From NCBI GenBank assembly GCA_002269645.1, contig NIVC01001134.1, forward strand, positions 248,001 to 312,000: a DNA stretch of 64,000 nucleotides. The letters run 5' to 3'. Every line of letters begins with the position of its first letter. Positions within the stretch are counted from its first letter, which is position 1. The position numbers and the translations under genes were made by a program. Source of the DNA: Macrostomum lignano. Its lineage: Eukaryota. Below the pieces are notes generated by a model that saw nothing but the letters and a program-made list of their open reading frames with translations, was not told where the DNA came from and made no database searches. Positions 50-56,512 of this stretch are shown piece by piece.

Positions 50-3000
50 TCAGAGCTGCTGAAATTCTGCCAGCATGGCGTCCATCTCTTGCTTGAGAGC
101 CGAGGTGCGCTGCTTCTCCTCGATCAACTTCTCTGCAAGCGGGGGCGCAGGCAAGGAGAGCGAATGTTTTAGTTTGGGGCCAAGTCACGTCAAAATTATT
201 CAAGCATGCGTCTCAAGCTGTCCGGTCTTTTCATTCTTATTTGACACCCAGAAATTCGAACAGTGTGGTGGGGAGCCACCAAACTGCTACAATAAAACCA
301 AGCGGGTGTTAGGAAGCCCCGAATCGCATGGCCGTAGAGAGCCCCATAATTGACATCGAATCGGCTGAGTGGAAATAAAGAGCCCTAAAAATCAAATTAG
401 GGTCAGCACGGTGGGAATCCTTCAGAACTGCACAGAGTGCGTTAAAAACGCAGACCAGAACTCACAATGGAATAAGGGAGCCACAAACTGGATCCCATAA
501 GATACCTGAGTCCAGAACCTAAAAGGGACGTAGAGAGCCCAGAAACTATTAGGGTTGTGGTAGCCCCATAGGCCATAATATACGTAGCTAGCCCCAAAAC
601 CCGCAAGGGACGTACAGAGCCCAAAAACCACATGACGTAGGGAGCCCCAAAATGCCCCGAGCACTCACAAAAATCGCAACCCCCCCAGAAACTGAAAGGT
701 GTGGGTTGCACCATAAAGCATAAAATTCGTAGGTAGCCCACAACCCATAAAGGACGCTTAGAGCCCAAAAACCACATAACGTAGGGAACCCCATACCGCC
801 GCCTAGAACTGGGGTACAATGAAAAACCGGAAGCTATATAAAAATGCAAGTTAGTAACAGAAAATTTTCACCGCCAACATGCAAACCACAGAGCAGTGTT
901 AAAAAATGATAGTTTTTAGCCGAAGGCAAATTAAAAGTGCTTAGGATCACCGGTATCTCATGGCAGACAAAAATAAATACTAAAATCTAAAACTAACACC
1001 GACACTAAAGCAAACTACTATATATATATGTAATTTAGCAACCTTCCGCCAAGTCTCTTTCGCGCCTCATCACGAGCAACTCTCGTTCCGCTTGCTCCAT
1101 ACGAAATACGCACTTGAAATAATAAGCCATTAAAATCATTACTTCGATTGATAGGCATTAATGATGATTAAGATTAAGCAGGTAATTATTGCAGCTAATT
1201 TAGATCGAAAGAATCATTATAAACTGTGTTGATTAACTAAATCGGCAATAGTGTTGGTTATTAAAGGAATTAAAAGTGCCGTGGCTACAATACAACATTG
1301 AATATTACTAATGAGTAGTAACTACTGCGTTTCTACTGCATTTTACCTTCCACCTTCTCCAATTCTTTCTGGCGTTTGGCCGCCTCTCGTTCAACATTTT
1401 CAGCCCTCTCGGTGGCCTGGCAGAGCCAAAAAATAAACAAAATTCGGATGAATTGAGGACAGCACGGCAAACCAGCAAGCAAAACATCCTGGATACGCTG
1501 CGTCACCGACGGCGAATATTAAATATACAAACTACTATAATACTGAAAATATAGACAGACGACTGGGATTCTGTGAGCATCATAAATCATAGTCAAAGTA
1601 CTACACAAACAATAAAACATTGATTTCAGGCACACAGGCTCAGTCAGGCTCAAGCGCGTACCCTCGAGACGGTCCACTTCGCTCTGCAGCTTCGACACCT
1701 GGCGCTCCGCCTCCTGGGCCCTCTGCTCCGCCTGGGTCACCGGGGTCAAGGGGGGGCACAAGATAGGTCAGAGACAGACAGAATCTAGCGTCAGGCTAGT
1801 AAGAGAACAGAATACAGAACGATATGATGGCAAGGGAACGAAGAAAGATAGAAACACGTAGATAGAAAGATGCTGTCAAGCTAGGTCAAGGTCAAGAGTT
1901 CAATAAAAGGTCAAATTGGTTAAGGTTAAAGATCAATTGAAGGTCAAGCTAGTTGAGGTCAAAGGTCAATAAAAGGTCAAGCTGGGTGAGGTCAAAGGTC
2001 AATAAAAGGTCAAGCTGGGTGAAGTCAAAGGTCAAAAGTCAGGTCAGGGATCAAGAGTTCAAACCAGGGTCATGCACTGTGTAGGCCTAGGGTCAAGCCA
2101 AGCGAGGTCAAAGGTCAAGCTACATGTACGCCAAAACAAAGTAAACAGGCATGCGCAGGCAAATTCTCAGTCATCAGCTACGCTGAAACAATACATGTTG
2201 CTAAAATTCATAAATTATATCGTAGATCTTGTAAGAGAAAAAGTGATAAATGCAGTTATTTTACCTGTTTCAGCCTGTCCGTGAGGTTTCTCATCTGGAT
2301 TTCGTAGGACTCCTCTCTGTCAACTGACTGCAAGAAACAAACGAACGATGCGGGTTGGAGGAGGCACGTGCTCAAGCGGAGATTCTCAGCAACCGGACTG
2401 GCGCAGACTGGCACTAACAAAATCTGCTTTCGTATTTTTAATAAAAAATTTCACACCAACCTGTCAGCATGCGGGTTGCAAGCAAACTCGGGAAATTTAC
2501 GCAGGCAAAAAAACGACAGGAAAAAACTCGATGCAAGATGAGCTGACAGCAGAGTGAACAGAAATCGTCTTGATTGAATAGACAGCAGGAATGAATCAAA
2601 TTTCAGCAGTAGAAACTCGATAGCCATTGATATTGTAATATGAAAAGTTCATACAGTTTCTGTACGACTAATTGGCAGTGACGGATTCAGATCAGCTGTT
2701 AGGAAAACTCGTGTCCAAGACCATTAGTTCATCAGGCTTAGCTCTCAGACCCTGTTTGCCATTCGGGTCAATAAGTTCTTTCAATAAGGTTTACCCTTCA
2801 GGTCCTTTAGATGTATCTATAAGTTCCTTCAGGTATAACCTTCAGGTCTGTATGCTACAGGTCCTTCAGGTTTATCCTTCAGGTCTGTACGCTTCAGGTC
2901 CTTTAGGTTTACATTTCAGGTCTGTACGCTTCAGGTTTACCCTTCAGGTCTGTACGCTACAGGTCCTTCAGGTTTACCCTTCAGGTTTGTACGCTTCAGG

Positions 3001-6000
3001 TCCTTCAGGTTTACCCTTCAGGTCTGTACGCTTCAGGTCTACCCTTCAGGTCTGTACGCTACGCTTCAGGTCCAAGGTTTGTACACTTTAGGTCCTTTCG
3101 GTTAACTCTTTAGATGCTTCAGGTTTTGTAAGGCCTTTGAGGTAATCTTTCTACTGGACTTTAAACTACTTTTATAGAGTAAAATTTCTCTAGTGCAACA
3201 TTGCCCATAGGAGTTGGAGAGCCAGCAGCTCCTGGATCCGCCACTGCCACACTAAAAGTACACAATGAACTGCATAAGCCACAGGCCCGACGGCCCGGCC
3301 GCTTACAGCCTTGAGCCGGTCTGTGAGCTCCCGGATGGTCTCCTCGTAGGACTCCTCGCGCTGGGCCGCCTCCTGCTCGGAGACCTCGAGCGACTTCATG
3401 TTGCTTCCGACAACGCGCAGCTCCTCCTCCAGCTCCAGAATTTTGCTACAGTTGTCGGTTTGCTGCTTTTAGCGTTGCTGGCTGACGGGTTATTATGCAT
3501 GGATGCGACGGGACTGGGCAGGTGGGTAAGCGGGACCTCGAGAAGGTCAATGAAGGTCAATGGGTTACGTAGATCGTAGGAGTAACTTAGACCACAAGGT
3601 TCAAGTGAATCATAAGGGTAGCCCCAGGTTGAAGGGCCACGTAGGTCATAAATTCAAAATCATAGGTCATGTGGTCATAAGAAAGTGGGGTCATATGGTC
3701 AAAAAATCATGGGCATGGGTTCATAAGGTCATAAGGTATAGGCTCATAAGGTTACGGGGTCATAATATAATTGGGTCATAAGGCTATAGGGTCATAGTTT
3801 CATGAGGTCATAAGTGTCATAGGTTCATAGGATCATAGGGTCATGGGTCATAGGTTCATGGGTTTATGGGGTCATAGGTTCATAGGGTCATGAGGTCATA
3901 AGGCCCTGGGATCATAAGGTGATAGGGTCAAATGATTTCACGCAATGCTAACACGCACATGTGAGCAACAGCAAAAAAAAATTACACCAAAGAGAAGCGA
4001 GAACAGCAAAAAAGGGCACAAATCCCAGAAAATGCAAAAGTGCCGGGGACAAGCGAAAAAGAAAACGCGCGCATGCTGACAGGTGAGTAAATTTTAGTAA
4101 ACAAATAAGAACCAATCATACTCATCAATAAGTTTTGACAGTGCGTCCATAGGGTTGCGTCGATTTTTTTCACCTAAGATTATAATAAATGCTAGAACCC
4201 TTCTTAAACTATAAGAGTATACGCTCGTAATAGTAGAACTAGATAAGATCAACGCTACTCATAGTAGTAGACCGTCTAGAATGAGAACATATCCATATTT
4301 CTGTTCACCTGGGCCTCGCTGGCCTCCAGCGATCGGAGGCTGTGGCCAAGGCGCTGCAGCTCCTCCTGCAGCTCCTTGGCGCGCCGCTCGCTAGCCTCGG
4401 CGCGGGATTCGGCGCGCTCGAGCTCGGACTCCGTCATGCGCTGCTTACGGCTCACCTGACGCCGGAACCGGATGTGGTTCGAACATTTCGTTACTCAGGG
4501 GGTCAATGTACTAATTAGAGGAAGTTTTATTGAAGGCTCAGTTTTGCTACACAGCACACAGCAGCGCGAGACTCGATGGCTTGTGAACAAGCGGAGTTTG
4601 TTCATAATACAATAAAGTTAGAAGGTCATGGAATACCGGTAATTGGGTCATAAGGTCACGGGTTATTCGGTCATAAGATCATGGAGTCAGTCATAAGGTC
4701 ATAAGGTCACTGAGTCAGTAGGTCATACTCATAAGGACAAGGAGTCATTGGGTTGGGTCATAAGTTCATGGAGTCAAAAGGTCATAAGGACACGGGGGTC
4801 ATTGGGTCATAAACTCATGGAGTCATTGGGTTAAAATTTCATGGAATCATTTGGTCATAAGGTCACGGAGTAATTGGGTCACAAGTTCATAGAGTCAATA
4901 GGTTATTAGGTCAAAATATTCAGACAAATGAATGGAATATTCAGTATATGAATATTTTCTACTAATTTTTTTTCTACTAATATTTTCTACTAACATGAAA
5001 ATTTTATCTCGCGAATGCATTACTGAACAAAATTGAGCCTTCAAAACATTTTTATCTAACAACTAGTGGTCATTGACATTACTTTTGTTATCTAAGCCAG
5101 ACTTCTTAAGTCAACTTTAGAAATCTAGCAACCAAAAGTGGCCAAAATTAACTACAAAACCCATTTAAATTGGACTTGCTATAGTAACAGTAACTAGTCT
5201 CCAGTTGACTTCATCAACTTAAGCGCAGAGTGCCAAGAGATACACACCAAATATACACAGCATTAGCATTCGCGCTGCACACAACTACAACGCAAGCCGC
5301 ATACCAAAACACAACGGAGAAAATGCAGACGCATAAGTTAGTATCAATAGCAGTCGCGCCAGACCAGAAGGCCCGACTGTGTTGCCAGCAAGGCAGGAGG
5401 CGGGAAACTGCGCAGCGCACACGCTGACACCCCGCCCGCCCCCTTCACTGGCCCGCATCTTGGACCAGAACCCAAACTCTCACTGTGCGTAGGCAAGCAC
5501 GCAGGCTCTGGCTGATGTTAATACATGAGAAATTCTAACGAAATTCTATTTCCGTACGTTTAAGTTACTGTTTGTTTGATTGGCGACCACGCTATTAGAC
5601 CGAAAACATCCTTTAAATAAAGCATTTAGCATAGGCGATTTCAGATCCAACTAGACCTGTCTACTGCGTGTCACAATCGATCTAAAACCTTCGTTATCTA
5701 AATTTAGCAATGAAACCTACCCCTCTCAGCCCCTACCTCACTCCACACTGAACAGCAACCCTCAATTTTCCTACCCCTCCCCAGCCCTACCTCACTCCGA
5801 ACTGGACAGCGACCCTCAATTTTCCTACCCCTCCCCAGCCCCACCTCACTCCGAACTGGACAGCGACCCTCAATTTTCCTACCCCTCCCCAGCCCCACCT
5901 CACTCCGAACTGGACAGCGACCCTCAATTTTCCTACCCCTCCCCAGCCCCACCTCACTCCGAACTGGACAGCGACCCTCAATTTTCCTACCCCTCCCCAG

Positions 6001-9000
6001 CCCCACCTCACTCCGAACTGGACAGCGACCCTCAATTTTCCTACCCCTCCCCAGCCCCACCTCACTCCGAACTGGACAGCGACCCTCAATTTTCCTACCC
6101 CTCCCCAGCCCCACCTCACTCCGAACTGGACAGCGACCCTCAATTTTCCTACCCCTCCCCAGCCCCACCTCACTCCGAACTGGACAGCGACCCTCAATTT
6201 TCCTACCCCTCCCCAGCCCCACCTCACTCCGAACTGGACAGCGACCCTCAATTTTCCTACCCCTCCCCAGCCCCACCTCACTCCGAACTGGACAGCGACC
6301 CTCAATTTTCCTACCCCTCCCCAGCCCCCACCTCACTCCAAACTTAACAACCATATCTTAATTTTCCTACCCCTCCTCAGCCCTCACCTCGCTCCCCATT
6401 GAACAGCCACCCCTCAATTGTACAACCCCTACAAGCCCAACCTCACTGAATCAATAACAGCCAAATTTCTAGCATGCAAACACAGCAAAATCATGCAGGT
6501 AATCAATGCCATGAGACAAAGTCGCACAGCCTTCTTCAATCCAATTCAGTCTCATCGCAATTTCCAGTCTAAAAAACCTTTCGGCAGTCTCCAGCCGAGA
6601 GTCGACCCGACCAAGGTCAACCTCGGAGATGGCCAGCCTGCGGGCGGCCTCGTCGTACTTTCTGTCAGCATCTTCGGCGATGAACTTGGCCTCTTTCAGC
6701 TGCTCTTCGAGCGAGCTGAGCCGCTCATCGGTAGCGAAAGAGGCGGTCTCCAGCAGCTTGCGGGCGCTGGACAGTCAGTTTGATTTGAATCAGTCAGTCA
6801 GCCAATTTTTTCAGTTCAATGCGACTCGCACAGTCATTCAAGCGTCACTTGGACGAAATGAGAAAAAAATCAGCAACGCTTAAGTCAAACGACCCCAAGA
6901 CAGCGAAAAAAGTAAAATTAGCCTTAAAAGAACGCCTACTGAAAACCTGGAGTCGGGGTGGAAAATTATCGAACAAACAATTGGCGGCCGCTACCTCCTC
7001 AAATTTCCGTTCGGCCTCGGCGGCGGCCTGCATTGAGTCCCGGTACCGCTGCTCGTGCTCGGCCGCTTCTATCTCCACCTTGCTGAGATTGGTCTCCATC
7101 ACCTTGCGAGACCTTGACGACAATGATGGTGGCAAAATGCTAAAATTTACTCCTGTTGGGCTCAATTTTGCCTAGATTGTTCAATAGGGGCTCAAAATGC
7201 TTCGGGGAGAAGCATGCGCGCATGCAAAAGGCACTAAAGTGCACAAGGCACTAAAGTGCACAAGGCACTAAAGTGCACAAGGCACTAAAGTGCACAAGGC
7301 ACTAAAGTGCACAAGGCACTAAAGTGCACAAGGCACTAAAGTGCACAAGGCACTAAAGTGCACAAGGCACTATATTTTTGTAAACGAAAGCAACTTAGAC
7401 TCTTATACAAAATCTAAAAAGTTAAATTCATAACGAGATGCAATGAAAAACAAGATTTTTTACGAAATAAGAGGTAAACAGGTTCGACTAAAACTGGTAG
7501 GACTACTAGGTGTTGTTATTAATTTTACTATAATTAGAAAATGCTAAACGTTGCATACAAAGTAGTGTTTCCTAAATCTTCTTTTCAATCTTTAACCAGT
7601 TTGTCTGCCAACTCTTTGCCAGGCTCCATATGGATGGATCAGCACAGGCAGATAAAATTGCAAAGCAAAAACTTGTGCTTACAGTTACTAGGGGCGCCAA
7701 AGTTGCTGTGGGGCCGTGGGGGGGGGGGGCGCCAAGGCCAAAGCTGCTGATAGGGAGGGGGCGCCAAAGCTGCTGATAGGGAGGGGCGCCAAAGCTGCTG
7801 ATAGGGAGGGGGCGCCAAAGCTGCTGATAGGGAGGGGCGCCAAAGCTGCTGATAGGGAGGGGGCGCCAAAGCTGCTGATAGGGAGGGGCGCCAAAGCTGC
7901 TGATAGGAAGGGGCGCCAAAGCTGCTGATAGGGAGGGGGCGCCAAAGCTGCTGATAGGGAGGGGGCGCCAAAGCTGCTGATAGGGAGGGGCGCCAAAGCT
8001 GCTGTGAGGGGGCGCCAAGGCCAAAGCTGCTGATAGGGAGGGGGCGCCAAAGCTGCTGATAGGGAGGGGCGCCAAAGCTACTGCTGTGAGCAACTCTATC
8101 TGCCCTATCGTGCCAAACTATAGCATTCAGAGCTCAAAGCAATGGCCAAGCTCTCACCGCTCGCTCTCATCAGCCAGTTTGCTGGCCTGCTCAAGCTTCG
8201 ATGTGACCTCCTGCCGCCTGCTCTCGGTCTGCTCCAGGTCCTCCTCTAGCAGTCGGATTCGCCTGGTCAGAGCCTGCACCTCAGCCTCGGCCTGAGGTGG
8301 CAAAATTACATAGTGAATTAATGGATAAAACTATTGCTTGAATTGAACTTTGAACTTTCGTAAAGCTGCTAAAGCTGGTCAACTCAATGGAAAAAGTTAG
8401 GAAAGGCCAGGACCCAACTCTAACTCATAAATAATTTCTGCAACTTAACAATGCAAAAGTTAGTTTGATTGCCAATACTTTAATCAAGTTGAGTTTTTAT
8501 CAAGTAGAATTGATATTAATATATAAATGATCCTAAGATTAGGACTCATATTCAAATATAGTTAATAAAGCCTATCAATTTGATAATTCTTAAAAAATTG
8601 CCCTTGCTATAGAAAAATTTATATAGCTACTCATTTAAAAATCAAGGGCATTGAAATATATATTAAGACCACTGTACTGTGGCTTCCGATTCCACGCCAT
8701 ATATTGTCTGTAAAACATAATGGAAATGGAAGCTCTCTTACCCTTATTAAAATTAATTTTTAGTGCCACACCCCCTTACCTTTGGTTTATGATCCTTTTC
8801 ACATCTGCACTCCATTGAAATGATTGCAAACCAAAGCTGGCAATACCTTTCTGCTTCATGGACTTTCAATTTTGCATATTTTTTCATTAGTCAGTTTTGA
8901 ACACAAATGAGTAGCAGTTTGAGTATTTGACATATTTTTCTTTAGCCAGCTTTGGTTTACAATAATTTAATGAGAAACATACATTTGGGTGATCATAAAG

Positions 9001-11771
9001 TGAGGTGATATATAAGCTATTAGCAAACTGATGTTTGAAAACATTTGATATTTTTAAAATTATTTGATATAAACATTTTTATATAGTGATTATCATTATT
9101 TGAAGTAGTTATAAACCAAAGGATTGCCAACAAAACCAATAAAATACATTAGGGCCTATTTAACAACTTAATAGTCTAGTTCAATAGTAGACCTAGAGGA
9201 AAAGGCCACTAGGGCCATGCCTCTTTAGTTATAACAAAAAATTTGTTATATTATACCTTTTGATAGACATACATGCGCAACCTCCAAAATTCGGTCGGCC
9301 GTGCGACTTAGTTTTAACAAAAAATGCGACGTAGTTTTTGGCTAAAAATGCGACTTACATGTAAAAAAAACCCTAAAGCAAAATTACCGCAACTTTGGGT
9401 AAACGGCAGGAGTAACTATGACTGTCTTATTAAGCTAAAATGCCTCGTCAGCTACTTAGTACTACTGCTTGGGTGTTTTTTCGGGTGGCCATTTTTGCGA
9501 CTTCTTTGGTTGGCCGCCAAATCGGTCGGCCGGATCGGCCGACTCGGCCGACTGTTGCGCATGTATGTTGATAGATAAAATATATAAGTTTATTTTCTAA
9601 TATTGGGTTATAAATACTTGGTATAACTTGCCCCCCTCAAAATTTTTCTTAGTCTGTCTTTGGTTGTCATTTTAAAAAAAAGATAATGTGATATAGGCCT
9701 AGATTCTTTTTTCTAAATATATTATTACTATTTATAATTATAAAATAGCACATTTTCAAAATAGCAGGCAATGGCTAGCTTTGCTGAAATAGCTGTTATA
9801 AATTGTGGTAGACCAAAATAATAATGTAACTGGGTGCTGACCAATTCAGGGACAAACAAATTCGGTGACAGAGATTCACCATAGACAAATTTGGCCAAAG
9901 CAAATTTGGCAACAATCTTGTCAAATTCAGCAATAGAATAATTCTGTATAATTTTATTAATTATTTTGGTACAATGATATCGATCATGCATATTAGCTTT
10001 CTTTTTAAATTGAGTTTGTTTTATCTATTATTTATCCTAAAATTTAATTCAATTATGCTTACCAATAAATGTTTGTTTAGGCCTGATTCTTGAAGAGATA
10101 CGCAATGCCTTTGATACAATATTTTCTATCAAAGGTCATGCATACAAGAGTTTAGTGGCTAGAGTCTCAAGGCACTTGCCACAGAAATCTAAATTTATAT
10201 AGTGTATATGTACAATAATTATATCAATTGACAATACTTCTATTCTGATATTTTCTGTATTTTTCTAAGTTAACTAACTAACTTCTACTTAGCTAACTAT
10301 GTATACCTTATAGTCATATGTCCTTAAGTTAAAGTCATATGTTGTACTATTAACAAAGGGGGTGGGGGTTGGTCTGGTCAGACAACAGATAGCTTATATC
10401 TGAAGCCTTGGTTGCAGTCAATAATTCCTTGACTGATTTAAAAATGACTTGTCACCAAATTTGCCTAAATTTTTGCCAACTGCCAAATTTGCTTTTGCCA
10501 AATTTGTCTGTGTTAATTCTGTTGCTGAATTTGTATGCATCCACTTAGGCCTAGCAACATAAGTCACCGACACCATTTGACTTTGTCTTTTGACAAAAAT
10601 AGGAAACAAAAACAAACAAATTAAAGATTTTTATAGCTTAATTCTGGATAATTTGGGAACCTGGAGTCACATTTTAAGTCAAAACCAAGCTGCATGGCTG
10701 ATGTAATTTCAGAGGTTGCATTTGCAAATGTATGGCTATTGGCTTATTATGGCTTATTAAGGTTTACTTTTATAATTATTTAGTTAGTTATCTTATCTTC
10801 ATAATTAATATTCTGAAGCTTTGACTAAGTAAAAGCATACCTGTGCTCGCAAATGAACTTCTTCCTTCAATGCAGCCTCTTTTTTAGAAAGCTCCTCTGT
10901 AACTTTATCGAGCTCATTTCTCAAACTTGTCATCTTGTTTTTAAGTGTTGCCAAAATGTTCTGGCCTTGACCCTGGTCCTTATTCGAAGACATAATCAAA
11001 TCAGTTAACACTGTATTTAAATTTCTAAGTAGGCCTAGTTCTTAGGAAAAAGTTATTTAAATCCAGTGTAAATGAGCTCAAACAAAGGCACTAAGACAAG
11101 TGGTAAAGGTTATTAAATTTACTATTAAGTGTCGTTAGCTAATTCACAAATTCGATTTTTTTCTATGAAACGCATTTTTTATCAAAATTCAAATGCCTCC
11201 TTTCGAAATAAACAAATAGATACATTTATTAGATATTTTTGCAGGATTTCAGCTGCACTAAAATACATAAAATAGGAAACTTACGTTGCTAGCTCGCTTT
11301 TCGGTCTCGTCCAAATTGGTGGTAGCTGCAGCTAATGTATCCTGCGCTTCGTCAACATTAATTTGCAATTGCTTTAATTTATTCTGAAACTCGCCCATCT
11401 CTTCTTCCTTCTTGTTCATTTCAGCTTCCTTTTCCTTTAGCTTTTCTTCCAGCTGGGTAGCTCTAAAATTTTTGAGTTGAATCCATCGGTGAGTGGGGCT
11501 TTATCGACATCTTAAACAATGCTTGCAAATTTGAATTCGAATTGTGTCGAATTCTGAGCTGGTATTCGTTCAGCATCGCAATCATACTCAAAATGTATTT
11601 GAAAACCCATGAAAGCAATCAGTGATGAAAGCAAATTCCTCATTATAATTTAAATACCATTGAAATATCAAACTCAAGTGCAATTTTCTGGTTCATCATG
11701 CAAACTTACTTTTCTCCAGCACTCTCACGCTCGTGCTTCATCACCAGCATCTTCTTCTTGATGGCGTCCAT
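50..11771 (-). CDS. TPM: Tropomyosin, long muscle-type isoform (spliced, 284 aa)
   Basis: Exons 11710-11771 ([12 protein letters not shown]), 11285-11462, 8158-8291 ([20 protein letters not shown]), 6578-6766 ([19 protein letters not shown]), 3307-3445 ([20 protein letters not shown]), 1662-1731, 50-132. All are GT-AG with compatible phases and sum to 855 nt = 284 aa + stop, the canonical tropomyosin length. Confidence 0.97.
1043..1112 (-). CDS. TPM: Tropomyosin alternative exon 8c (divergent)
   Basis: Exactly 70 nt, tttcaAG acceptor, GTTGCT donor, phase 0/1; [23 protein letters not shown]. Confidence 0.65.
1347..1416 (-). CDS. TPM: Tropomyosin alternative exon 8b
   Basis: 70 nt, phase 0/1, GTAAAA donor; [23 protein letters not shown]. 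Confidence 0.85.
1875..2125. repeat. AGGTCA-rich degenerate repeat
   Basis: Many GGTCA(A) motifs; related GGTCAT tracts at 3545-3930 and 4620-4915. Confidence 0.75.
2265..2327 (-). CDS. TPM: Tropomyosin alternative exon 7b
   Basis: 63 nt, ttgtttcttgcAG acceptor, GTAAAA donor; [21 protein letters not shown], paralogous to [21 protein letters not shown]. Confidence 0.9.
2787..3125. repeat. CTTCAGGT-based degenerate tandem repeat
   Basis: Repeated cttcaggtctgtacg / ggtttacccttcaggt units. Confidence 0.85.
4309..4455 (-). CDS. TPM: Tropomyosin alternative fused exon 5+6b
   Basis: 147 nt = 71+76, phase 0/0, GTGAAC donor; [49 protein letters not shown]. Confidence 0.88.
5734..6420. repeat. 54-bp minisatellite (~12 copies), G-quadruplex-like on minus strand
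   Basis: Unit ccctcaattttcctacccctccccagccccacctcactccgaactggacagcga, nearly invariant. Confidence 0.97.
6995..7112 (-). CDS. TPM: Tropomyosin alternative exon 4b
   Basis: 118 nt (canonical exon-4 size), AG/GT flanked, phase 2 in and 0 out; [39 protein letters not shown]. Confidence 0.88.
7229..7370. repeat. 17-bp minisatellite (~8 copies)
   Basis: Unit aggcactaaagtgcaca. Confidence 0.95.
7690..8085. repeat. 25-26-bp minisatellite
   Basis: Unit gggcgccaaagctgctgatagggag(g). Confidence 0.95.
9268..9567. mobile_element. Non-autonomous hAT-type MITE (300 bp)
   Basis: Perfect 14-bp TIRs CATACATGCGCAAC (9268-9281 / 9554-9567), perfect 8-bp TSD TTGATAGA (9260-9267 / 9568-9575), subterminal TCGGCCG and GCGACTT repeats. 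Confidence 0.9.
9397..9460 (+). pseudogene. Decayed 28S rRNA fragment (helix 69-71 region) inside the MITE
   Basis: 52/64 ungapped identity by hand to the conserved LSU sequence GGGTAAACGGCGGGAGTAACTATGACTCTCTTAAGGTAGCCAAATGCCTCGTCATCTAATTAGT (recalled, not searched). Confidence 0.85.
9850..10545. mobile_element. Decayed foldback/MITE-like element
   Basis: Inverted repeat 9883-9911 vs 10481-10509 (28/29 identical) with weaker extensions; termini and TSD not resolved. Confidence 0.45.
10841..10993 (-). CDS. TPM: Tropomyosin alternative first coding exon (short, exon-1b-like isoform)
   Basis: [51 protein letters not shown], 51 codons of coiled coil, ends in a phase-0 GTATGC donor compatible with exon 3; would give a ~255-aa short isoform. 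Confidence 0.88.
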
Positions 11772-15108: not shown

Positions 15109-16558
15109 TCAGTTGTCAGTTTCAGTTTTTCCACCTTTCCGGACAACGTCGGCCACCAGCTCCAGCAGTCGGTCGTCTGACAGAATCGCCACGTGCTGCG
15201 CCTTGGCCAGCCGCGTCACCCGCACCGGCGCCGCCTGTTTCGCCGACCAGTCGCGACAGAGGCGCGCCGTGGACGCCGCCACAGTGCCGTCGCCGTTCTC
15301 GTGCTCGTCGGCATCAGCCACTTTGTCGCCAACCTTCGGCCAGGCGATGCTGGCCAGAGTCGGCAGGCCGTCGCCAAAAACGCAAGTGGTGGTCACTCCG
15401 GGCGGCTTGCCGACGTCCGTGAGCTCGCCGTACCTGGCCCGGCCCTCGGCGTAGCCTTTCGCGAAGCTAGCCTTGGCGAACAGGGCGGACAAGTTGGCCG
15501 TGGTGTACACGGCGTCTGGCGGCGATGGCGGAGCCCTCTTCGACTTCACCAGGGGCCGGTCAGACCCGAATAGGATGGCATCGGGCAGCAGGTAGTGCGT
15601 GCTTGGCCAGGACCGCTGAACCGTGCGGAATTGCAGCGGATTGATGGTGGGAATTCCGAGGTTGTAGCCTGGAATGCAGTGGCTATTTAGAGTAGGGAAT
15701 TCCCGGGAATGTAGCTTTGAATTGGGTGGCTATTTATAGTAGGGAACTCCCGGGAATGTAGCCTTGAATGTGGTGGCTATTTATAGTAGGGGATTCCCGG
15801 CGCTGTAGCCTTGAATGTGGTGGCTATTTATAGTAGGGGATTCCCGGATTATAGCCTCGAATGTGGTGGCTATTTATAGTTGGAAACCCGGATTGCAGCC
15901 TTGAGTGTGATGCTATCTATAGTAGGGAATTCCCACATTGTAGAGTGGAATGCAGCGGCTATTTTTAAAAACGGGGTTTCCTACATGTACATGAAAGCCT
16001 AGAATGTCGAGCTATATATAATAGGAAAATCTCATTGTCTGATATGATACAGTTGTCAGTTGTCAGTTGTTTGATTGTACAAAGTAACTTGGATTGTTGA
16101 ATTGCCAAAGTCATCTATACAGAATGCGATACGAAAGTCAGCAGTCATTACATTGGTGGAAGTCTACTTATAGATGTAGAAAGGGGAATTCCTATTTGTA
16201 GGTTGTGACCTGGAATAACACAGGAATCTCATGGTATGGAAAATTCCATGCTTCCATACCTGAAAGCATGGCCAGGAGTGAGACAGTGACACCGCCGAAT
16301 GCGCCACCGATTGCTACAAAGTGCCCGATGTACTGATCCCTCCAATGCTGCGGCTGGGAGTGCAGAAAGTGAAGCATCAGTTTGCCACCGAGGCTGTGCG
16401 CTACGAGAACCACCTTGCGACCCGAAGCTCGATGGAAAGAGTCCTCGATGAGAGTCTTCAGGGACTGGAAATAATCCCCGAGTTCGTCTGCGGACAGAAT
16501 TTATTGAGATAGACATGACTCAACTTTAATTGCAATTTCCTGCTCACCTGCCCCATGA

Positions 16559-23985: not shown

Positions 23986-56512
<32,527 letters not shown>

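Follow-up and report, generated by a model that had tools for sequence, protein, structure and literature searches.

A Macrostomum lignano tropomyosin gene that probably carries two interleaved, frame-locked exon tracks derived by intron loss from an older tandem array

The stretch of Macrostomum lignano DNA analysed here (64,000 nucleotides (nt) of contig NIVC01001134.1, assembly GCA_002269645.1, positions 248,001 to 312,000, hereafter the window) contains a tropomyosin gene on its minus strand, extending from approximately position 11771 down to the window start, as placed by tblastn with a shrimp tropomyosin sequence. Exons were read from the minus strand as segments with AG before and GT after them. 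The gene encodes residues 126-234 twice, in five exons flanked in this way that lie within positions 2265-7112 and follow one another in the transcript as 4b, 4a+5a, 5b+6b, 6a+7a and 7b: track A consists of the fused exons 4a+5a and 6a+7a, and track B of 4b, the fused exon 5b+6b, and 7b (Table 1). We consider it likely that the two interleaved tracks are locked by their reading frames and originated through intron loss in an older tandem array.

The tracks are equal in length (189 + 139 nt for A and 118 + 147 + 63 nt for B, 328 nt each), and either of them, joined with exons 1a, 2, 3, 8 and 9z, gives an open reading frame of 284 amino acids with the N-terminus MDAIKKKM. Their junctions differ in phase: 4a+5a ends two nucleotides into a codon whose third base is supplied by 6a+7a (phase 2), whereas all junctions of track B fall at codon boundaries (phase 0). 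The fused exons run without an intron through the former junctions of 4a with 5a (GAG/GCC), 5b with 6b (GCG/GCG) and 6a with 7a (GAG/GCG), and no additional copy of exons 4-7 in unfused form turned up in a fixed-length scan of the gene. The original prediction, which had been made from the letters of the window, gave these five exons with their exact sizes (its coordinates run from the outer end of 7b to that of 4b), and its phases, equal track lengths and 284-residue products were all reproduced from the minus-strand exons; its description of A as conserved and B as divergent agrees with the identities of the two to shrimp tropomyosin (64% versus 43%).

The history of this arrangement was sought in comparison loci, which were scanned for open, AG/GT-bounded segments whose lengths equal the ancestral ones exactly; the segments were scored against tropomyosin. 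The four flatworm loci used come from genes whose over-long database models run through both tracks. All four parasitic-flatworm genes contain an unfused array in the order 3-4b-4a-5a-5b-6b-6a-7a-7b-8a-8b, with exons of 118, 71, 76, 63 and 70 nt; these are the genes of Echinococcus granulosus, Schistosoma japonicum and Paragonimus heterotremus, and a second tropomyosin paralogue in S. margrebowiei that has been published as TpmII in S. mansoni. Five metagenome contigs have the order 4b-4a-5a-5b-6b-6a-7-8a-8b with introns of 35-140 nt, and the gap between 6b and 6a is only about 35 nt, which suggests a spacing short enough for steric exclusivity in this metagenomic invertebrate. The contig group does not belong to the rhabditophoran flatworms, since its exon 1/2 intron lies at the ancestral site (after about residue 38), whereas rhabditophorans have in common with the window gene an intron after codon 21. 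A scan of metagenomes with the A segment yielded an 83%-identical muscle-type cDNA, and neither a B-type partner nor a second fused locus.

Exon sizes of 118, 71, 76 and 63 nt are the classical ancestral sizes of bilaterian tropomyosin exons, as in the vertebrate TPM genes, and their occurrence in separate exons makes the unfused state the older one. The alternating order (b-a, a-b, b-a, a-b) is likewise old, so that exons of the same track were already neighbours before fusion. The introns between 4a and 5a, 5b and 6b, and 6a and 7a, which are present at those sites in five other genes, have been lost to the nucleotide in the window gene. They are the only introns in the stretch without an exon of the other track inside, so that complementary loss is what selection permits, whatever the mechanism. 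The M. lignano layout was thus evidently derived from the array 4b-4a-5a-5b-6b-6a-7a-7b by precise loss of three introns, and the branching of Macrostomorpha before the lineage of the parasites fits a fusion that is a derived, lineage-specific event. The ancestral order that had been deduced beforehand (4b-4a, 5a-5b, 6b-6a, 7a-7b) therefore exists unfused in four flatworm genes; intron loss had been expected only between neighbours used in the same mRNA, which is where 3 of 3 missing introns sit; and the proposed check of intron positions in orthologous loci brought to light unfused homologues with ancestral exon lengths.

Track B, like track A, is intact coding sequence of the same length and in the same heptad register. 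Hydrophobic residues occupy 22 of 31 a and d heptad positions of B in the register of the flanking exons, whereas each of the six remaining registers has only 4-14 of 31; in A, for which the register is fixed by residue 1, the count is 25 of 31. The GC content at third codon positions (GC3) is 0.71-0.90 in B exons and 0.76-0.87 in A exons, the GC content of the introns being 0.42-0.49. Each B exon is open in the tropomyosin frame only, and B can be aligned with A over 328 nt without an indel or stop at 38.5% residue identity; in composition-matched shuffles, all three B exons were open in about 3.5% of cases (0.25 x 0.42 x 0.33). The 109 residues of B alone give a colinear match to Pfam Tropomyosin (PF00261, profile positions 85-192, 81 bits, curated cut-off 38.6 bits), and the complete A and B isoforms score 260 and 201 bits. 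Both isoforms thus have the profile match, the single-register heptads and the 284 residues of a tropomyosin.

Table 1. Exons of the tropomyosin gene and complementary intronic boxes, in positions of the window.
Feature	Position	Strand	Remarks
Exon 1a, coding part	11710-11771	minus	62 nt from ATG at 11771; 21 residues; ends in phase 2
Exon 2	11285-11462	minus	178 nt; what is left of ancestral exon 1, together with exon 2, to residue 80
Candidate exon 1b	10841-10993	minus	51 codons from ATG to a GT donor in phase 0; lies between exon 2 and exon 3
Exon 3	8158-8291	minus	134 nt; constitutive; ends in phase 2
Exon 4b (track B)	6995-7112	minus	118 nt; residues 126-164
Fused exon 4a+5a (track A)	6578-6766	minus	189 nt (118 + 71); residues 126-188; ends in phase 2
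Fused exon 5b+6b (track B)	4309-4455	minus	147 nt (71 + 76); residues 165-213; phase 0 at both ends
Fused exon 6a+7a (track A)	3307-3445	minus	139 nt (76 + 63); residues 188-234
Exon 7b (track B)	2265-2327	minus	63 nt; residues 214-234; phase 0 at both ends
Exon 8a	1662-1731	minus	70 nt; 23 residues
Exon 8b	1347-1416	minus	70 nt; 23 residues
Candidate third exon 8 ('8c')	1043-1112	minus	70 nt; AG/GT; open in phase 0; 23 residues
Exon 9z	50-132	minus	27 residues and stop codon; non-muscle type of C-terminus
Box 1, upstream arm	4063-4092	minus	Intron between 5b+6b and 6a+7a; pairs with 2449-2478
Box 1, downstream arm	2449-2478	minus	About 130 nt upstream of the 7b acceptor
Box 2, arm	7140-7152	minus	28-40 nt upstream of the 4b acceptor; complementary to 4085-4097
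Box 3, shared arm	5028-5059	minus	Intron between 4a+5a and 5b+6b; partners 7159-7170 and 4515-4546

According to the favoured explanation, an older array of single-exon tandem duplicates, in which exons of the same isoform lay next to each other in pairs, lost the 4a/5a, 5b/6b and 6a/7a introns in this lineage, leaving to each track only the introns that house exons of the other. Because introns are kept only around exons of the other track, A is joined in phase 2 and B in phase 0, and direct junctions between A and B break the frame. The pre-mRNA would then be spliced along one track or the other, to give either isoform A, which we infer to be muscle-like, or the divergent isoform B, which is probably cytoskeletal. 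Mixing of exons as in the unfused Schistosoma gene could no longer give a full-length protein. Candidates for keeping the spliceosome on one track are tissue-specific regulators, coupling to the 1a and 1b promoters, and long-range pairing of intronic RNA.

Several observations weigh against this explanation and are given here with the alternatives to which they lend weight. The first alternative concerns exclusivity. All four direct cross junctions (4b to 6a+7a, 4a+5a to 5b+6b, 4a+5a to 7b, and 5b+6b to 6a+7a) are out of frame. Switches from A to B run into premature stops 96-276 nt ahead of the last junction, which makes them plausible targets of nonsense-mediated decay (NMD); switches from B to A meet no stop before the window edge and would be expected to give aberrant proteins, not NMD substrates, so that NMD is not the whole of the enforcement. 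It is possible, if doubtful, that the tracks are not strictly exclusive and that more than two products are made, by exon skipping, by inclusion of 7b after 6a+7a, or by use of leftover AG dinucleotides. Exon 7b is in frame after 6a+7a (305 amino acids), as are splicing from exon 3 to 6a+7a, splicing from 4b to 7b and skipping of 7b, which remove 63, 49 and 21 codons, respectively, so that whole heptads are deleted or added in every case. The places where 4a once met 5a and 6a met 7a (6648/6649 and 3369/3370) also still have AG dinucleotides, which are compatible with the phase-0 donors of track B and could in principle generate hybrids of 284 amino acids. However, these internal AGs have no pyrimidine tract and lie within purine-rich exon sequence, which makes their use unlikely, and the actin-binding period of tropomyosin, about 39 residues, is not matched by the loss of 49 or 63 residues.

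The original prediction that four either/or choices are reduced to two isoforms therefore stands for the direct A/B junctions, 4 of 4 of which shift the frame, but not for A plus 7b or for the three skips, which remain in frame. Since mixtures like those of Schistosoma TpmII break the reading frame here, the reduction to two cassettes nevertheless amounts to a real cut in the coding possibilities. Two criteria for mutually exclusive exons (MXE/MATE) give different results at this locus: the a and b copies of exons 4-7 are arranged in tandem on the same strand and align without gaps (47-57% nucleotide and 26-62% amino acid identity), whereas equality of length and phase is absent exon by exon (118, 189, 147, 139 and 63 nt) and holds for whole tracks only.

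The second alternative concerns the mechanism of intron loss, which the original prediction took to be mediated by cDNA. Exact excision of all three introns, and their presence in homologues, accord with that mechanism, but concerted loss of neighbouring introns and a bias towards the 3' end, which would also be expected of it, are not seen. Removal by genomic deletion, for example through microhomology-mediated repair, instead of recombination with reverse-transcribed mRNA is a conceivable course of events to which we give less than even weight. In its favour, introns that are gone take turns with introns that remain along each mRNA, whereas cDNA-mediated loss typically affects runs of adjacent introns with a 3' bias. 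Against it, 3 of 3 losses are exact to the nucleotide, and the retention of introns is also explained by selection, because exons of the other track lie inside them. The data fit either cDNA recombination or another precise deletion mechanism.

The third alternative concerns the ancestry of the b copies. The 5b segment of the window gene is 57-65% identical to 5a of the parasites and only 22-43% identical to their 5b, and its 7b is 62% identical to 7a and 19-29% identical to 7b of the parasites. Because 5b and 7b of M. lignano are nearer to a-type exons, the case for inheritance of the b copies rests on exon order and not on sequence. Within the gene, 7a (3307-3369) and 7b (2265-2327) share an identical run of 14 nt (GAGGAGTCCTACGA) and 62% of their residues, far above the other a/b pairs, which suggests gene conversion or a younger duplication. 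Three possibilities are that b exons evolved slowly in this lineage and fast in the parasites, that a copies converted b copies, and that some of the duplicates are independent.

That the b exons of M. lignano are independent recent duplicates, or have been partly overwritten by conversion, and that their matching order is convergent, is unlikely. It would account for the resemblance of 5b and 7b to a-type exons and for the run shared by 7a and 7b, and recurrent independent duplication of tropomyosin exons is documented (PMC3342872, citing Irimia et al. 2010). However, the a/b order is the same at positions 4, 5, 6, 7 and 8 in four flatworm genes that represent two paralogues, and at positions 4-6 in a non-flatworm; five matching orders would be reached by chance about once in 32 times, and the fast evolution of the parasites' b exons depresses b-b identity. 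Inheritance is favoured by this agreement in order across five positions and five genes.

The last alternative concerns whether track B is used at all. Several acceptors in the gene have no obvious pyrimidine tract. No orthologue of B was found in a word-indexed search of 5.8 billion clustered proteins, in a complete scan with HMMER that covered 1.84 billion representatives, or among metagenome contigs, the best HMMER matches being ordinary or over-long arthropod-type tropomyosins (43-46% identity). A protein search with isoform A returned nothing identical or near-identical, its best matches being flatworm tropomyosins, so that the collection contains no transcript of this species; nowhere in the collections searched does a protein or a contig match either isoform exactly or closely. 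Although these negative searches, the low identity of B to the reference tropomyosin and the weak pyrimidine tracts of the 4b and 5b+6b acceptors are what would be expected if A exons alone reached the mRNA and 4b, 5b+6b and 7b were decaying pseudo-exons, such a relic is very improbable, because all three B exons have kept AG/GT and their exact ancestral lengths, the heptad register, coding-type GC3, the above-threshold Pfam match and an openness rarely matched by shuffled sequence are all preserved over 328 nt free of indels and stops, and b-type exons are expressed in Schistosoma (PMC4026961).

If the frame-locked tracks are spliced as proposed, pairing between introns is one candidate for coordinating them. 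An inverted-repeat search of the gene yielded three boxes, which were evaluated post hoc by determining the longest exact complement for each pair of introns in comparison with 100 shuffles. The core of box 1 is a perfect complement of 15 nt (4070-4084 with 2459-2473) that extends to 26 base pairs (-34.9 kcal/mol); the 15-mer occurs at these two sites only in the 64-kb window, and none of the 100 shuffles reached 15 nt. Its pairing would loop out 6a+7a and bring 5b+6b beside 7b. Box 2 is a perfect complement of 13 nt, also unique in the window, a length that was reached by 2 of 100 shuffles; its site at 4085-4097 overlaps the extended helix of box 1, so that the two pairings are mutually exclusive. 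The shared arm of box 3 has one partner upstream of 4b (7159-7170) and another upstream of 5b+6b (4515-4546), and 6 of 100 shuffles did as well. By this post hoc count, a box lies within 150 nt upstream of every B exon and of no A exon.

The sites at 4066-4097, 2449-2478 and 7139-7173 look like copies of one sequence of about 30 nt (CGCATGCTGACAGGTGAGTAAATTTTAG), which could be a repeat fragment and which contains on the plus strand a consensus motif resembling a 5' splice site (CAG/GTGAGT, 4081-4089). The duplexes show no strand asymmetry, sense and antisense energies being similar, and hence no sign of selection at the RNA level. In the Echinococcus gene, a distant locus, 2 of 45 intron pairs had complements equalled by at most 5 of 100 shuffles, as many pairs as chance would give, and Rfam gave no match in the window. 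A bistable RNA bridge centred on the 28-nt site at 4070-4097, coordinating the choice of track across 5 kb, is a speculative model that we rate as improbable. In one state, the site would pair upstream of 7b, 6a+7a would be looped out and the 4b acceptor would be free, giving track B; in the other, the overlapping part of the site would pair 28-40 nt upstream of the 4b acceptor, masking 4b and releasing 6a+7a, with track A as the outcome. Two splicing decisions far apart would then be governed together by one structural switch, in a gene whose decisions the staggered fusion has already made very few.

The window is rich in minisatellites, and they occur in every long intron of the gene (5716-6447, 7223-7372, 7737-8083, 2812-3062, 3688-3930, 4753-4913 and 1875-2035), with units that include 54 nt (13.5 copies), 26 nt (13.5 copies) and 17 nt (8.8 copies). 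Arrays of the GGTCAT/AGGTCA type flank 5b+6b in the same orientation. The AGGTCA/GGTCAT minisatellites around 5b+6b and 7b were considered as a splicing signal and rejected, as the same family, inverted, fills 44-48 kb of the window.

At its 5' end, the gene lacks the ancestral exon 1/2 intron (which separates 114 from 126 nt) and has instead an intron after codon 21 (separating 62 from 178 nt) in common with Echinococcus, Schistosoma and Paragonimus; this intron is found neither in the annelid Dimorphilus nor in the metagenomic invertebrate (contig L053), and may represent a flatworm-specific intron shift. The candidate exon 1b resembles trematode exon 1b in position and sequence type, and would imply that a promoter inside the gene gives rise to a short tropomyosin of about 255 amino acids. 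Towards the 3' end, exon 8a is 87-91% identical to exon 8a of TpmI-type genes of the parasites, and the candidate exon 8c, downstream of 8a and 8b, is coiled-coil-like with a weak similarity score (28); the loci of the parasites have two copies of exon 8 only. Exon 9z resembles the trematode exon RIITERAMYETLRKEMDTMINEFHSI. The muscle-type exon 9 of Echinococcus (ending in ELDQTFAELTGY) is located downstream of the non-muscle exon 9, and none was found within the window, so that the M. lignano gene probably extends past the window start. Elsewhere in the window, the minus strand encodes a PDE2-like cyclic-nucleotide phosphodiesterase in at least three exons (23989-26853), which exon by exon is 83-88% identical to M. 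lignano A0A1I8JLH5 (the next match being 57% identical), an identity that points to a macrostomid flatworm, either another Macrostomum species or a diverged copy of the gene. The minus strand also has an open reading frame of 146 amino acids (15109-15549), a candidate lecithin-cholesterol acyltransferase/phospholipase judging by its appearance.

Tropomyosin is the standard example of how duplicated, mutually exclusive exons diversify isoforms, and the locus bears on the question of how choices at several exon pairs are linked into coherent isoforms. It points to a purely structural route: duplicates belonging to the same isoform are adjacent, and precise intron loss leaves two frame-locked cassettes in place of four independent choices. 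Combinatorial splicing thereby moves one step closer to a pair of 'genes within a gene'. With the unfused array of the parasitic flatworms, and the mixing of exons in Schistosoma TpmII, states before and after this step are open to experimental comparison. Predictors of mutually exclusive exons that require equal length and phase, and gene finders generally, would miss or mis-join such loci. Several database models of the parasites' genes string both tracks together into proteins of 370-490 amino acids; five public models run a exons, b exons and stretches of intron together into proteins of 370-470 amino acids, and these are annotation errors caused by interleaved duplicates.

Exclusivity by frame incompatibility together with NMD is familiar from exons IIIb and IIIc of FGFR2, where inclusion of both or neither member of one pair shifts the frame. 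Wrong combinations shift the frame in M. lignano as well, with stops well upstream of the last junction after A-to-B switches; unlike in FGFR2, the shift results from differing intron positions, and B-to-A switches would escape NMD. Docking-site/selector and looping RNA structures control exclusive splicing in Dscam exon 6, 14-3-3 zeta and Mhc. The M. lignano gene resembles these in having unique complementary intronic boxes near alternative exons, one putative duplex bracketing 6a+7a and one shared arm having two partners, but its boxes have strand-symmetric energies, look like copies of one short repeat and have no counterpart in Echinococcus.

The closest flatworm system is TpmII of S. mansoni (Smp_031770), in which exons F/G, H/I, J/K, L/M, N/O and P/Q form pairs (Silas et al. 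2014, PMC4026961). At least 13 isoforms of TpmII with mixed a and b exons have been reported, and the cloned non-muscle isoform TpmII.3 retains a 10-residue epitope of 4a type while many other exons are substituted (PMC4026961). One S. mansoni TpmII model joins 4a-5b-6a, and the order mapped in the S. margrebowiei orthologue is b-a, a-b, b-a, a-b, a-b. Like that of M. lignano, this flatworm gene has tandem duplicates, here of each of exons 4-9, whose splicing is mutually exclusive; unlike in M. lignano, they are separate and of ancestral sizes, whereas the three fusions of the window gene forbid mixing at 4/5, 5/6 and 6/7.

Fused exons 6+7 also serve as alternative cassettes in arthropod tropomyosins, as judged from three over-long arthropod-like models, but the alternatives there have the same boundaries and form an ordinary exclusive cluster without stagger. 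Mutually exclusive sets of tropomyosin exons are reportedly associated into 'internal paralogues' in the study by Irimia et al. (2010, Mol Biol Evol 27:1504). Literature searches found nothing on the staggered architecture or on Macrostomum tropomyosin, that study not having been checked for such a case. A review of MATEs describes duplicated, mutually exclusive tropomyosin exons and 'internal paralogues' of long and short form (PMC3342872). The M. lignano gene shares with these metazoan genes the tandem duplication of internal exons, the long and short isoforms (putative in M. lignano) that derive from 1a and 1b, and the association of alternatives along the gene. Theirs, however, are equal in length and phase and are formally independent choices, whereas in M. 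lignano staggered fusion leaves only whole tracks in frame, an arrangement that appears to be new relative to the published cases of duplicated, exclusive tropomyosin exons.

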